A DNA stretch of 64,000 nt from the IMG/VR virus record IMGVR_UViG_3300028558_000016, positions 418,157 to 482,156 of that record; one strand, given 5' to 3'. Shown here piece by piece: positions 1-4,466 of this stretch. The position numbers and the translations under genes were made by a program. A model generated the notes under the pieces. That model made no database searches. It saw only the letters and a list, made by a program, of their open reading frames with translations, and was not told the DNA's origin. Within the stretch, counting starts at the first letter, position 1. Each line of letters begins with the position of its first letter.

Positions 1-56
1 GACAGAGCGCCGGTCTTCGGAACCGGGCGTCGGGAGTTCGAATCTCTCCGTGGGTA
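1..56 (+). tRNA. tRNA-Arg(UCG), 5' end cut by window edge
   Basis: Anticodon arm ccggt-cttcgga-accgg; T arm gggag-ttcgaat-ctctc; 3' acceptor strand cgtgggt plus discriminator A; no encoded CCA. Confidence 0.9.
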
Positions 57-80
57 CTGAAGTAAAATGGAATTAAATAT

Positions 81-170
81 GCCCGTGTAGCCGAGGAAGT
101 TTTCTAAACTTTTATCCGTAATTGGAGCTGCGTCTCACGACTAATGGGGGTTCGAATCCCTCCACGGGTA
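81..170 (+). tRNA. Atypical tRNA-like element, apparent Arg(UCU) anticodon, no D-arm, 33-nt variable region
   Basis: Acceptor gcccgtg/cacgggt; T arm ggggg-ttcgaat-ccctc; arm gaagt-tttctaa-acttt has the same loop as the canonical Arg(UCU) gene at 4389; only 8 nt between acceptor and anticodon arm. Confidence 0.55.
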
Positions 171-185
171 CTTAAAATTAAAGTT

Positions 186-1349
186 ATGAAAATTGATATT
201 GATAAAATAAAACAGATCCCCAAAGAGATTTCGGAAGAATTTGGGATGTGCGTCTATGGACCAATCTCAGATGAGATTAAGGCATGGATGGAATTCCATG
301 GTATGCAATCGCAAAACATGGGAAATTATACAAACATCTATACAGATAAAAACATTATTGATCTGTTCAATAAACCAGAACCATTTGAATACATCGATGG
401 GTTCAGTCCAAACCTAAACAAGAATCTTCACATTGGACACTTCTCAAATTTAGTTCTTGCAAAGGCTTTCGTCTCTCTTGGAATAGCAAAGAAGACTGTG
501 GCAATATTGGGAGACACGTTAGAAGGGGATGTTTCAAAGGAAGATGCGTTGAACAACTACAATGAGATATGTGAGAAATTCTCATACCCCGTAGATAAGA
601 TGTTCATGGCTTCTGAAATGGAATCTGATTACAACCTCGTGGATGGTGTTCATGAATATGAAGGAACCAAAGTGTTCTATCTTGATACGCCATTAGTTGG
701 AATCAAAAGCGATGGGTCAACAACATATTTCTATCAGGACGTTGCATTGGCACAAAAATTAAATGCTCCAACATTATATCTTACAGGAAGCGAACAGAAC
801 GGACATTTCAACAGCTTAAAGGAAATGTTTCCTAAAATAAAGCACATTGGACTTGGACTTGTAAAAGCAAAAGGAGGAAAGATGTCAAGCAGACTCGGAA
901 ATGTTATTTGGATGCAAGATGTCATCGATGAAATGATGAGCAACTTTCAAGACGAAAAAGTGTGCTATAATGTTTTTGCAGGATTTATTTTGAAATCAAC
1001 TCCTAAGTCTGAAAAGAACATAGACATATATCAATTGGACAATCCATTGAATTCACCTGGATTGTACTTAAGCTATACGTTAGCAAAACTAAAAAGCGCT
1101 GGAGTGAAATGTGAAGGAAAAACATTCACCTCTCAAGATCTTCAATTCAAATACATGAAGGCCTTGAACTCTCTTTCTCCAAATATTTTGCTTGAAGGTT
1201 TAATTGATCATGCAAAGAAGATAAGCGGTTTATACATCACTCACAAGATAAAAGATAATGCGGTGAACCAGTCCATGTTTGAAATATTGGGTTCAGATTT
1301 ATTATTAGGAATGAGCCTCCTGGGTTTATTTGATGTTGACAAGGTTTAA
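186..1349 (+). CDS. argS: Arginyl-tRNA synthetase, shortened (about 387 aa)
   Basis: SPNLNKNLHIGH (HIGH motif), KSDGSTTY, KMSSRLGNVI and a DALR-like SPGLYLSYTLAKL segment; start moved to ATG 186 because the upstream ORF part overlaps the tRNA-like element. Confidence 0.9.
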   Translation: MKIDIDKIKQIPKEISEEFGMCVYGPISDEIKAWMEFHGMQSQNMGNYTNIYTDKNIIDLFNKPEPFEYIDGFSPNLNKNLHIGHFSNLVLAKAFVSLGIAKKTVAILGDTLEGDVSKEDALNNYNEICEKFSYPVDKMFMASEMESDYNLVDGVHEYEGTKVFYLDTPLVGIKSDGSTTYFYQDVALAQKLNAPTLYLTGSEQNGHFNSLKEMFPKIKHIGLGLVKAKGGKMSSRLGNVIWMQDVIDEMMSNFQDEKVCYNVFAGFILKSTPKSEKNIDIYQLDNPLNSPGLYLSYTLAKLKSAGVKCEGKTFTSQDLQFKYMKALNSLSPNILLEGLIDHAKKISGLYITHKIKDNAVNQSMFEILGSDLLLGMSLLGLFDVDKV

Positions 1350-1406
1350 TTAATTTTTCGTAAATTAGTCTTGCGCATCTATTTATAAACTGATAATCTA
1401 AATCAA

Positions 1407-2363
1407 ATGGCAACCAAAACATCTAAAGCCGCAACAGGAACCGTGAAAGCACGAACAGCAGGAAGAAAAGCAACGACATCAACAAAGACACCAATGAAAG
1501 CAGAAACTACATTGGAACCAAAAAAGGCCTCGAAGATTAAAATAAGTGGAAAAGAAGTTACATTGAACGGGTATTTTAAAATTGAATTGGGAACCTTTTC
1601 GATTTTAAAGCACAACATCCGAAACAACATAAGCACTCTTTTAATAGGTCCAACAGGACTTGGAAAAACAGATGTCGCAGTTAACATTGCGTCTGTGCTC
1701 GATGTTCCTATAACCATATTTGATATGGGAACGATGACTGACCCCATCATGGGACTTGTTGGAACTCACGTCATAGAGGTTAAAGATGGAAAAACATATT
1801 CTGAATTCAAGAAAAGCAGATTCTCTGACGTCATCCAAAAACCAGGAATAGTTTTATTGGATGAGGTCAATCGTGCTGCATCAGCCGCTAACAACTTATT
1901 ATTTCCTTGTTTAGATTTCAGAAGAGAGCTTCCAATGGAATATTCGTTTGGAGATACTAAGCCAATTCCAATTCATCCTAAATGTGTTTTCTTTGCAACG
2001 GCAAATATAGGATCTCAGTATACCGGAACTCACAAGCTTGACAGAGCATTAATCGATAGGTTCATGATTATTGCAGTTGATAGTCTCAACACTCAACAAA
2101 TTATGTCCACGTTAGAAGTGACTCATTCTAAATTAAGTGAGACTGACAGAAAAAAGATTGTTGACATTTACAACAAGATAAACAAAGAGCATGACGATTT
2201 CAAAATAGGTTTCAATTTGTCAATACGACATTTGAAAACTGTTGCGACACTTGTGCAAAACAAGTTCACGATATATGATGCGTATTATGCAATATGCAAA
2301 GGACTTGGTGGACCAGAAGGATTAAAAGCTATTGAATCGATCTTAAGCACCTCTAAAAAATGA
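1407..2363 (+). CDS. MoxR/CbbQ-NirQ-NorQ family AAA+ ATPase
   Basis: GPTGLGKT Walker A, LLDEVNR Walker B, ATAN sensor, LDRALIDRF. Confidence 0.9.
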   Translation: MATKTSKAATGTVKARTAGRKATTSTKTPMKAETTLEPKKASKIKISGKEVTLNGYFKIELGTFSILKHNIRNNISTLLIGPTGLGKTDVAVNIASVLDVPITIFDMGTMTDPIMGLVGTHVIEVKDGKTYSEFKKSRFSDVIQKPGIVLLDEVNRAASAANNLLFPCLDFRRELPMEYSFGDTKPIPIHPKCVFFATANIGSQYTGTHKLDRALIDRFMIIAVDSLNTQQIMSTLEVTHSKLSETDRKKIVDIYNKINKEHDDFKIGFNLSIRHLKTVATLVQNKFTIYDAYYAICKGLGGPEGLKAIESILSTSKK

Positions 2364-4099
2364 TAGGATTTGATATTACAGGAAAGAAATCAAAAAGCGT
2401 AACTAAATGGGAAGACTCATTGTTTGGAGGCTATTACAGAACTGTAATGGATTACCCGGACGTGAAAGTTCACAGCAACGTTGATTTTGATTTTGGAACC
2501 ATAGCGTATGGAAGTTACTTTTTAAAAGAGAAGATCTTGAAGATTTTCTTATCTAAGGTTAAAACACACGGTTACACTACAAAGCTTTTGGATAACTGTA
2601 CTGTCGAAAGAAAACGAGATGCATGGGGTGATGAAATCACTGAGGCCACCGTAGATAATAACAGCAAGCTCAGTACAATAAGAGCTGTGATTGCAAGAGA
2701 ACCAGAGTTTGCTCCTATGTTTTCCCATTATATGAAGTTTATAATGGACACCAGAATTTACTTTTACAAAAGCAATTCTAAAGCTCCAAGCAATGGGACT
2801 GGTTCTTCAGACGACGATTTTGAAGAATTTAAGGATGAAAACGAAAATGACGAATCATCCGGAAAATCAGAAGAAGAAAAATCTAAAAACGGAAACTCCG
2901 GTAAAGGCAAAGAGAAAGAGAAAGAAGAAGAGAAACCAGAAGAAACCAAGGATGAAAGCTCTGGTGATGGAGAAGGAGAAGAAAAAGAGGAGCCAGAAAA
3001 TTCCGAATCTGATGGTTCAAATTCTGAAGAAGAAAAGGAAGAAGAAAAAGGAGATGGAGAAGGAGAAGGAGAAGAAAAATCTCCAGAGGATAAGGCGTTG
3101 GAAGATAAATTAGAAAAAGAACTTGAGAAAAGGAAACAGGAAATAGAAGAACGAGAACAGAAGGCAAAACAAAAACCTGTCAAAAAATTAACTCAGGCTG
3201 AAATAAATCAAATCCAAGAATCTTTCAAAAAGGCCATTCAAAGTATAGTTGAAGAGTCCATTGTTCATAGCTACATTTCAGGATTTAAAAAACCTGTTAA
3301 AGTAATTTTTGAACGACCAAATGTTAGAGACACTGAGTTTAATTACGAAGACAAAAGAATAGCCGAGAATCTCGTTAAGATGCTCGACATTTCATTTGAC
3401 CCAGCGAAAGAAATAGTAAAGAACTTGCGTCTTGGCAAATTGGACATATCAAAGATTGCAGAGGTTCCAGCCGGAAATATTGCCATATACAAGCAGGATG
3501 TGGAAAATCAAACGACTAAACCATTTAGCATTGTAATATTATGTGATGAGTCAGGAAGCATGGGTTCTGGACATGAATACAAAGGACGTGGCGATAAATT
3601 GTATTCGCAATATAGAATAGTCAAACAATTGTACTTGGCATTTTCTGACATCATTCCACAGAATAAACTCTATGTGTATGGACATTCGGGATCAGAAGAA
3701 CCTGAGCTTTATGTTTATCAAGATTCTTATCGTCCAAATTTTACCAAGACGATTGATCACATGATCCACAACCATAATCACCATTCCAATTATGATGGAC
3801 CTGCAATAGAAGAAGTTTACAATCAGGTAAGAAATTCCACCGATGATAGAATAATTTTTATTTGTCTTTCTGATGGTCAACCTGCTGGAAATAATTATGG
3901 AGGTCACGATGATCAATTGAAAATGAAACAAATAATTGAAAAATGTAAGAGGGATGAATTCGTGACTGTTGGTGTTGGAATTCAATATTTCACCGTAAAG
4001 AATCTTTATCAATACAGCACGGTGGTAACTGATCTGGATGAAATGGCTAAGAAAGTGAGTCACATAGTCAATCACGTGGTCAAAAGTGAGTTTCAATAA
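2360..4099 (+). CDS. CobT-like vWA-domain protein with long acidic/charged linker; probable partner of the MoxR ATPase
   Basis: MIDAS-like ILCDESGSM and CLSDGQP; E/K/S/G-rich linker; ATGA overlap with the ATPase. Confidence 0.85.
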   Translation: MIGFDITGKKSKSVTKWEDSLFGGYYRTVMDYPDVKVHSNVDFDFGTIAYGSYFLKEKILKIFLSKVKTHGYTTKLLDNCTVERKRDAWGDEITEATVDNNSKLSTIRAVIAREPEFAPMFSHYMKFIMDTRIYFYKSNSKAPSNGTGSSDDDFEEFKDENENDESSGKSEEEKSKNGNSGKGKEKEKEEEKPEETKDESSGDGEGEEKEEPENSESDGSNSEEEKEEEKGDGEGEGEEKSPEDKALEDKLEKELEKRKQEIEEREQKAKQKPVKKLTQAEINQIQESFKKAIQSIVEESIVHSYISGFKKPVKVIFERPNVRDTEFNYEDKRIAENLVKMLDISFDPAKEIVKNLRLGKLDISKIAEVPAGNIAIYKQDVENQTTKPFSIVILCDESGSMGSGHEYKGRGDKLYSQYRIVKQLYLAFSDIIPQNKLYVYGHSGSEEPELYVYQDSYRPNFTKTIDHMIHNHNHHSNYDGPAIEEVYNQVRNSTDDRIIFICLSDGQPAGNNYGGHDDQLKMKQIIEKCKRDEFVTVGVGIQYFTVKNLYQYSTVVTDLDEMAKKVSHIVNHVVKSEFQ

Positions 4100-4116: not shown

Positions 4117-4389
4117 ATGTTCTTTGACACGATACAAAATATTCTTCTCGCAAAGAGAAAGAGAAAAGAGTATGGATATACAGCAGTAGGAGAATTGCTT
4201 AGAAATGTTCATGGAACTGAAGCAAAAATAATAGATGTTATTTTTAATCCGGCTGGATCCATTATAAAATTTGCTTACGATGATGACATGTTCTATTATA
4301 CAACAATAGAGAAGCTCCAGACAAAATATTTTAAGATGATTGAATATTCTTCTGGTAGAATGTCAAATGAAGAATATGGAAATGAATAG
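4117..4389 (+). CDS. Hypothetical protein
   Basis: 90-aa ORF in the co-oriented block. Confidence 0.6.
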   Translation: MFFDTIQNILLAKRKRKEYGYTAVGELLRNVHGTEAKIIDVIFNPAGSIIKFAYDDDMFYYTTIEKLQTKYFKMIEYSSGRMSNEEYGNE

Positions 4390-4462
4390 GTCCCGTAGCT
4401 CAGCTGGATAGAGCACAGGTTTTCTAAACCTGCGGTCCTTGGTTCGAATCCAAGCGGGATCA
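4389..4462 (+). tRNA. tRNA-Arg(UCU)
   Basis: Full cloverleaf: ggtcccg/cgggatc; D arm gctc-agctggata-gagc with A20; caggt-tttctaa-acctg; T loop ttcgaat. Confidence 0.95.
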
Positions 4463-4466
4463 CAAA

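Follow-up and report, generated by a model that had tools for sequence, protein, structure and literature searches.

The tRNA-like element and its surroundings

We analysed a stretch of 64,000 nucleotides (the window), which is the last 64 kb of a 482,156-bp viral record, IMGVR_UViG_3300028558_000016, from rhizosphere metagenomes. The genome is 36.8% GC, and AGA makes up 71% of Arg codons in its long open frames. The features considered here are the following (window coordinates; + denotes the plus strand).

1..56 (+), 3' part of the canonical tRNA-Arg(UCG) that precedes the element in the tRNA array
81..170 (+), the tRNA-like element, composed of the next ten segments
81..87 (+), acceptor stem, 5' strand (GCCCGTG), pairing with 163-169
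88..91 (+), 5' strand of helix P1 (TAGC: U8/A9-like T88 A89, then G90 C91), pairing with 127-130
92..94 (+), 5' strand of helix P2 (CGA); C92:G118 and G93:C117 pair, A94.C116 is unpaired in this copy
96..112 (+), anticodon arm, stem 96-100 with 108-112, loop 101-107 TTTCTAA, anticodon TCT at 103-105 (reads AGA)
116..118 (+), 3' strand of P2 (CCG)
119..126 (+), D-loop-like bulge TAATTGGA; A120 like A14, A121 like R15, G124 G125 like G18 G19, A126 like A20/A21
127..130 (+), 3' strand of P1 (GCTG)
131..145 (+), variable region with an optional hairpin, 132-134 with 139-141 (GTC/GAC, loop TCAC), then CTAAT; T145 is the Y48-like base
146..162 (+), T arm, stem 146-150 with 158-162, loop TTCGAAT
163..170 (+), acceptor stem, 3' strand (163-169), and discriminator A170; no encoded CCA in this copy
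186..1349 (+), short, divergent ArgRS-like gene (387 aa, HIGH and KMSSR motifs), 16 nt downstream of the element
1407..4099, MoxR-type AAA+ ATPase gene followed by a VWA-domain gene, directly downstream of the ArgRS-like gene
4389..4463 (+), canonical tRNA-Arg(UCU) of the same phage

The preliminary description had reported an intact acceptor stem and T arm, a UCU anticodon arm only 8 nt after the acceptor, and a 33-nt stretch with two mini-hairpins in place of a D-arm. This observation holds, as all these features are present in the sequence. The acceptor stem has 7 bp (G81.T169 is a wobble), 8 nt (88-95) separate it from the anticodon stem, and the 33 nt between the anticodon and T arms (113-145) contain TAATTGGAGC. 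The loop of the anticodon arm matches that of the canonical tRNA-Arg(UCU) at 4389-4463. There is no hairpin D-arm, that is, no 3-4 bp stem closing a 7-11 nt loop, between position 9 and the anticodon arm. The Rfam tRNA model (RF00005) matches the element at 34.7 bits against a gathering score of 29. It skips the D-arm (5 nt in place of 15 model positions) and inserts 30 nt after the anticodon arm. The two canonical tRNAs of the window score 68 (4389-4463) and 74 bits, and the partial tRNA at 1-56, cut off at the 5' end, scores 33.7 bits. ARAGORN does not call the element. The single-sequence fold is not unusually stable (z = -1.5), but it pairs 88-91 with 127-130. An independent rhizosphere metagenome contig covers the element and its flanks with 0 differences (3,090 letters).

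The element closes a run of tRNA-Arg genes, called by ARAGORN as ACG, CCU and UCG at genome positions 417983-418213. The downstream ArgRS-like gene matches Pfam tRNA-synt_1d (E=3.6e-8) and NCBIfam argS at 48 bits, far below the cut-off of 261. It aligns to the argS profile from about profile position 300 at protein residue 169, which suggests a missing N-terminal domain. A search of PDB gave no sequence match for this protein, and its AlphaFold model is poor (mean pLDDT 57.7), thus anything said of its domains rests on profile offsets only. Other cut-down synthetase-like genes, HisRS-like (242 aa, genome 414457-415185) and TrpRS-like (243 aa, genome 415182-415913), lie beside tRNA-His and near tRNA-Trp, respectively; both also score far below the NCBIfam equivalog cut-offs. 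Three tRNA(CUA) amber-suppressor-like genes are called at genome 358020-358092 (-), 368276-368349 and 374278-374351. However, open-frame cover is already 90.7% in code 11 and rises only to 93.1% if TAG is read through. Thus there is no sign of recoding, and code 11 was used throughout.

Homologues and covariation

Megablast of window positions 1-3000 against GenBank phages found nothing, and neither did a search of viral contigs with the ArgRS-like protein. Patterns built on the RNA itself were more successful. Searching viral contigs for the anticodon loop at an abnormal distance from the T loop gave the same layout in other phages. About 75% of the hits of the first, loose pattern were unrelated, mostly a neighbouring tRNA downstream of a chance TTTTCTAA, and were discarded by structure parsing and model score. 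In the same search, loci L018, L021, L024 and L036 (same sequence), and also L051 and L055 (L-numbers denote the retrieved loci), contain a T arm and the TTTTCTAA motif but fit neither the canonical nor the present layout; they may be further unusual tRNA-like genes or chance matches. A second scan, not fixing the anticodon (GGAGCTG close to the T loop), gave many more members. In total, at least 63 distinct homologues were collected from about 45 viral contigs, the window's own genome and cultured phages. As most members were found with patterns that fix the T loop or a D-like motif, the true diversity is probably larger.

A covariance model (R1) built from 39 distinct sequences separates the family cleanly. 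Family members score 47-92 bits, apart from two borderline UAU copies with variable-loop inserts at 42.5 and 43.8 bits, while canonical tRNAs score about 42 bits or less. The window copy scores 80 bits, canonical tRNAs of the same genome reach at most 36 bits, and the tRNA-Arg(UCU) at 4389-4463 scores only 28.6 bits; the match is thus far more than chance. The model found two more members just upstream of the window, Ile(UAU) at genome 415936-416017 (L176:1501-1582) and Ile(GAU) at genome 417396-417476 (L175:660-740), both followed by CCA and both missed by ARAGORN. A canonical tRNA-Ile(GAU) lies at 417751-417825. A tRNA-Cys(GCA)-like sequence with an oversized D loop of about 18 nt, also not called by ARAGORN, was seen at genome 126308-126390.

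Covariation in homologues had been proposed beforehand as a test of the element, and it was found. On a structure-blind MAFFT alignment, 95.2% of cells of the proposed structure are paired against 66.7% in shuffles, and the covariation score is 0.77 against 0.21 (0 of 500 shuffles reach it), with slid controls giving 0.08-0.15. The model-based alignment of 63 sequences gives 95.8% and 0.80. In the acceptor stem all 7 pairs change on both sides, with 97.7% of cells paired. All 5 pairs of the anticodon stem covary. In the T stem 98.4% of cells are paired and 4 of 5 pairs change on both sides.

Two further helices are supported. In P2 (92-94 with 116-118) the first pair is CG 56 and UA 7, and the second pair is GC 43, CG 12 and AU 8, both without mispairs in 63 sequences; mutual information for the middle pair is in the range of the classical stems. 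The third P2 pair forms in about half of the members. In P1 (88-91 with 127-130) the G90:C128 column pair is GC 33, AU 7, UA 3, CG 1, other 4, the C91:G127 pair is CG 37, UG 3, AU 2, whereas T88.G130 and A89:T129 are nearly invariant. The 5' connector is therefore one strand of a D-stem-like helix, whose other strand, 3' of the anticodon arm, is split by the 8-nt bulge TAATTGGA, and this helix continues into the anticodon stem across a small internal loop. The anticodon arm is nested within the D-stem-like pairs, and the four-way junction of the cloverleaf becomes a three-way junction.

However, P1 and P2 are short, and in the window copy P2 has only two Watson-Crick pairs. Unconstrained RNAalifold recovers only the three classical stems, thus P1 and P2 rest on pair counts rather than on energy. 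On a tree built without the tested columns, the two sides of the middle P2 pair (13-40; the other mispair-free pair is 12-41) change together in all 17 inferred changes, and the R/Y pair described below changes in 10-11. The tree of such 80-nt sequences is poorly resolved, and the strict independent-pairs test had only 1-3 supported contrasts, too few to reach significance.

The first of the two previously drawn hairpins (115-118 with 123-126) is not supported, although the minimum-energy fold of the single sequence includes it: 61.1% of cells are paired against 59.7% in shuffles, and there is no covariation. The second (132-134 with 139-141) is a lineage-specific insert in what is a 5-nt variable loop in most members (for example AAAAT); hairpins of different sequence occur at the same site in L014, L131 and L171.

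The bulge retains signatures of a tRNA core. Its T, A and GG are invariant or nearly so, and the U8-like T88 is conserved. The strongest covarying column pair outside the helices joins the purine after the invariant TA (A121) and the last base before the T stem (T145), with AU 51, GC 11, other 1, which is the pattern of the R15:Y48 Levitt pair. That these bases make the tertiary contacts is inferred. The base after GG is A in 46 of 50 sequences with C35 (Arg) and U in three of the four members with A35 (Ile). The main ArgRS determinants are C35, U/G36 and A20 in the D loop, and the window copy has the corresponding bases, with anticodon TCT and A126 after GG.

Distribution among phages and anticodons

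The family anticodons are Arg UCU (30), UCG (8), ACG (7), CCU (6) and GCG (2), Ile UAU (4) and GAU (3), Met or Ile CAU (1), and Lys CUU (1). The UCU count is inflated, as the first searches favoured it, and one further CAU sequence, a canonical tRNA of 42.6 bits, was not counted as a member. U33 and purine 37 are kept. By our count, 32 of the 64 family sequences listed have CCA directly after the discriminator. The members are 75-91 nt long and lie in tRNA arrays or intergenic gaps, on the strand of their neighbours. L077, L085, L094, L134 and L156 carry three or four Arg isoacceptors of this type, and L004 combines canonical CCU and ACG with UCU and UCG of this type. One phage (L007 and L097, both from the 211-kb contig IMGVR_UViG_3300037087_000760) carries two subtypes, a TAATGGC type with UCU and a TAGCCGAC type with ACG. 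ARAGORN calls the L027 copy as tRNA-Asp(atc), but this rests on an alternative anticodon arm that the window copy cannot form.

The element is present in cultured phages, none of whose records annotates it as a tRNA. In Pseudomonas phage PA11 (R1 score 87.9 bits) it is intergenic, overlapping the end of an HNH gene, and seven PA11-like phages, found by blastn only, have no feature or an ORF there. Pseudomonas phage Boevelstad (L185, 80.8 bits) and Microbacterium phage Pumpernickel (L303, 75.1 bits) have no feature at this place. Maribacter phage Panino (83.3 bits) has a "hypothetical protein" inside the tRNA array, and Microbacterium phage Zooman (L304, 78.3 bits) also has a "hypothetical protein". 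A 735-kb uncultured phage, LR756501, has one as well (58.3 bits). The Ile-type member has no blastn match in cultured phages. In prokaryote genome assemblies, a scan with one subtype pattern gave about 9 true members among the first 80 loci inspected, all on MAG contigs, which may or may not be viral, and none in an isolate chromosome.

Two cases argue that the gene is needed. PA11 (44.8% GC) has no other tRNA by ARAGORN or in its record, while 244 of 628 Arg codons in its long genes are AGA or AGG; the paper on its relative TC6 reports "no intact tRNA genes" and 45% GC against 66% in the host (PMC6209634). The 41 annotated tRNAs of Pumpernickel include Arg ACG (twice), CCG and CCU but not UCU, which only this element supplies. 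On the other hand, the phage of the window has a canonical tRNA-Arg(UCU) 4.2 kb downstream, so here the gene is formally redundant.

The ArgRS-like gene is next to a tRNA-Arg of this type in the window, L014 and L164 (homologues of about 49% identity). The link to phage argS thus holds in three phages but is not general. Given the HisRS-like and TrpRS-like genes described above, it may reflect clustering by amino acid rather than a special pairing.

Possible function and comparison with other tRNAs

The interpretation given in the preliminary description is partly supported. A novel cloverleaf variant is supported, and the remark that D-loop sequence lies on the wrong side of the anticodon arm was the key insight. 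The absence of a D-arm needs refining, as a D-stem-like helix exists, and the two-hairpin variable region is wrong for the first hairpin. A decayed tRNA is contradicted by the conservation, by encoded CCA ends and by the diversity of anticodons.

The most likely explanation, in which we have fair but not full confidence, is that the element encodes a working tRNA-Arg(UCU) of a previously undescribed structural class found in phages. The sequence features, the conserved layout with compensatory changes, the covarying R/Y columns and the distribution of anticodons and CCA ends are results of the analysis, whereas expression, processing, charging, decoding and the three-dimensional arrangement are inferred; all sequencing runs in which this phage was found are DNA runs. 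In this view, the strand 90-94 runs straight into the anticodon stem and pairs with 116-118 and with 127-128, possibly extending to 130. The composite D/anticodon arm of up to 4 + 3 + 5 base pairs plus the internal loop is close to the roughly 12 stacked layers of a normal tRNA (the anticodon stem, the 26-44 pair, the D stem, and the 8-14 and 15-48 pairs), and the overall L-shape could therefore be kept. This, as well as the ability of the bulge to reach both the junction and the T loop, is argued from layer counts only. The bulge would act as the D-loop, with GG docking on the T loop, A121 pairing with T145, and A126 serving as the A20 determinant for arginyl-tRNA synthetase. The RNA would be transcribed with the tRNA array, trimmed at G81 and A170, given CCA after transcription, charged with arginine and used to read AGA.

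An unlikely alternative is a decoy or sponge that mimics tRNA-Arg to soak up a host anticodon nuclease or another tRNA-directed defence factor, one of the readings offered initially. In the window's genome and in L006, L007, L008, L012, L014 and L027 the element sits beside a canonical tRNA-Arg(UCU), and so is not needed there as the only decoder. RNA ligase or RtcB-like repair ligase genes, and in Pumpernickel also a homing endonuclease gene, lie about 0.3-2.2 kb upstream of the element in Boevelstad, Pumpernickel and Zooman; the tRNA region of Pumpernickel also contains genes for a Ro-like RNA-binding protein and a peptidyl-tRNA hydrolase. Phage tRNAs can counter tRNA-targeting defences (PMC10264068). 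However, a decoy would not need five different Arg anticodons plus Ile and Lys, encoded CCA ends, or an identity base that tracks the anticodon, and it fits poorly with PA11 and Pumpernickel.

Somewhat less likely still is an aminoacyl carrier delivering arginine to a non-ribosomal transferase, or a signalling tRNA-like RNA. There is a precedent for phage enzymes using aminoacyl-tRNA for DNA modification (Mom, PMC13219725), PA11 encodes amidoligase and glutamine amidotransferase genes, and an altered body could keep the RNA off EF-Tu or the ribosome. However, the anticodon loop is fully canonical, the set of anticodons follows codon families, the acceptor/T minihelix that EF-Tu binds is unchanged, and no transferase gene is consistently linked. 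An ordinary type II-like tRNA with a cryptic D-arm and two variable-region hairpins is very unlikely, since hairpin 115-126 pairs no more often than shuffles, most members have only 5 nt at the second hairpin, and 116-118 instead covaries with 92-94. A pseudogene, although compatible with the low Rfam score, the silence of ARAGORN and the statement on TC6, is contradicted by the same architecture being kept, with compensatory changes, in phages of Pseudomonas, Maribacter and Microbacterium and in soil, gut and aquatic viral contigs.

As to why the core was rewired, the leading guess is escape from host factors that recognise a normal D-arm, a reasonable idea given the nearby ligase genes and the counter-defence role of phage tRNAs, but a hypothesis only. 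A more far-reaching version, which we consider doubtful, is that the fold is adaptive, defining a translationally active tRNA class that phages evolved so that their Arg, Ile and Lys decoders escape host nucleases, modification enzymes or sensors that read a normal D-arm or tRNA core. In the megaphages it would pair with the cut-down ArgRS, which by its profile offset appears to lack the N-terminal D-loop-binding domain, to form a phage-private synthetase/tRNA pair.

Outside organelles tRNA shape is treated as almost invariant, and a 2024 paper states that all known bacterial tRNAs are canonical (PMC11551756). The present family is natural and widespread in bacterial viruses, and several carriers are cultured on tractable hosts. 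If it is charged and decodes, it shows how much freedom the bacterial translation apparatus, RNase P and ArgRS allow in the tRNA body, gives a natural scaffold for orthogonal tRNA design, and exposes a blind spot in phage annotation, as genomes reported as having no tRNA or no AGA decoder, such as PA11/TC6 and Pumpernickel, do have one. Literature searches on non-canonical or D-arm-lacking phage tRNAs, novel cloverleaves, long-variable-arm phage tRNAs and the tRNAs of PA11 gave no description of this layout, although a subscription-only or very recent report cannot be excluded; the 2020 review of non-canonical tRNAs (PMC7609411) and the allo-tRNA paper (PMC5389517) do not contain it.

With canonical bacterial and phage tRNA-Arg(UCU) the family shares the 7/5 acceptor/T minihelix, T loop TTCGAAT, an anticodon loop with U33 and A37, the U8 A9 G10 C11 start, GG and a following A in D-loop-like sequence, R15/Y48-type covariation, a 5-nt variable loop, the discriminator and frequent encoded CCA. 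It differs in the anticodon arm lying inside the D-arm instead of after it, in D-stem partners split by the bulge, in the three-way junction, and in an Rfam score of about half the normal value. The closest analogues are D-armless mitochondrial tRNAs, such as animal mt-tRNA-Ser(AGY) and nematode mt-tRNA-Ser(UCU) (PMC7609411, PMC4013460), which also have no hairpin D-arm 5' of the anticodon arm. In the Steinberg/Cedergren models, connector and variable-region bases are thought to lengthen the anticodon helix so that the distance from anticodon to acceptor end is kept. Those tRNAs are shrunken, lack the GG/T-loop lock and depend on adapted mitochondrial factors, whereas the phage family keeps full length, a bulge with GG, R15/Y48-like covariation and a normal T arm, and occurs in bacterial viruses. 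The laboratory-evolved non-canonical tRNA in E. coli (PMC11551756) shows that bacterial translation can use a non-cloverleaf body; that tRNA is engineered, and the present family would be a natural counter-example in bacterial viruses. Phage tRNAs that resist host nucleases through anticodon-loop changes (PMC10264068) likewise duplicate host or phage isoacceptors and may be shaped by defence pressure, but they keep the cloverleaf and vary only the loop, whereas here the loop is canonical, the body is rewired and any link to a nuclease is hypothetical. The element is not a permuted or split gene, as the two acceptor strands are the ends of one 90-nt gene.

Class II tRNAs (Leu/Ser/Tyr) and allo-tRNAs with 8/4 or 9/3 branches (PMC5389517) also have extra sequence between the anticodon and T arms, and were also found in phage tRNA clusters by metagenome mining. 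However, they have a normal D-arm, with a 3-7 bp variable arm between positions 44 and 48 in class II, and the 8/4 or 9/3 acceptor/T split of allo-tRNAs (and of tRNA-Sec-like molecules) differs from the 7/5 split observed here and throughout the family. In most members the extra sequence is not a variable arm but the displaced D-loop and D-stem strands; the window copy and a few others carry a small hairpin there. Elsewhere in the window's genome, eight tRNAs of isotypes that normally lack a variable arm (Asn x2, Met, Lys, Glu, Gln, Trp, His; genome 5778-5869, 6974-7059, 7373-7464, 124757-124843, 386605-386692, 387507-387591, 413915-413998, 414375-414464) carry a 4-5 bp variable-arm hairpin. 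Most of them sit next to a normal-length isoacceptor, and the hairpins share no motif. Related phages (L006, L012, L014, L049) show the same habit.
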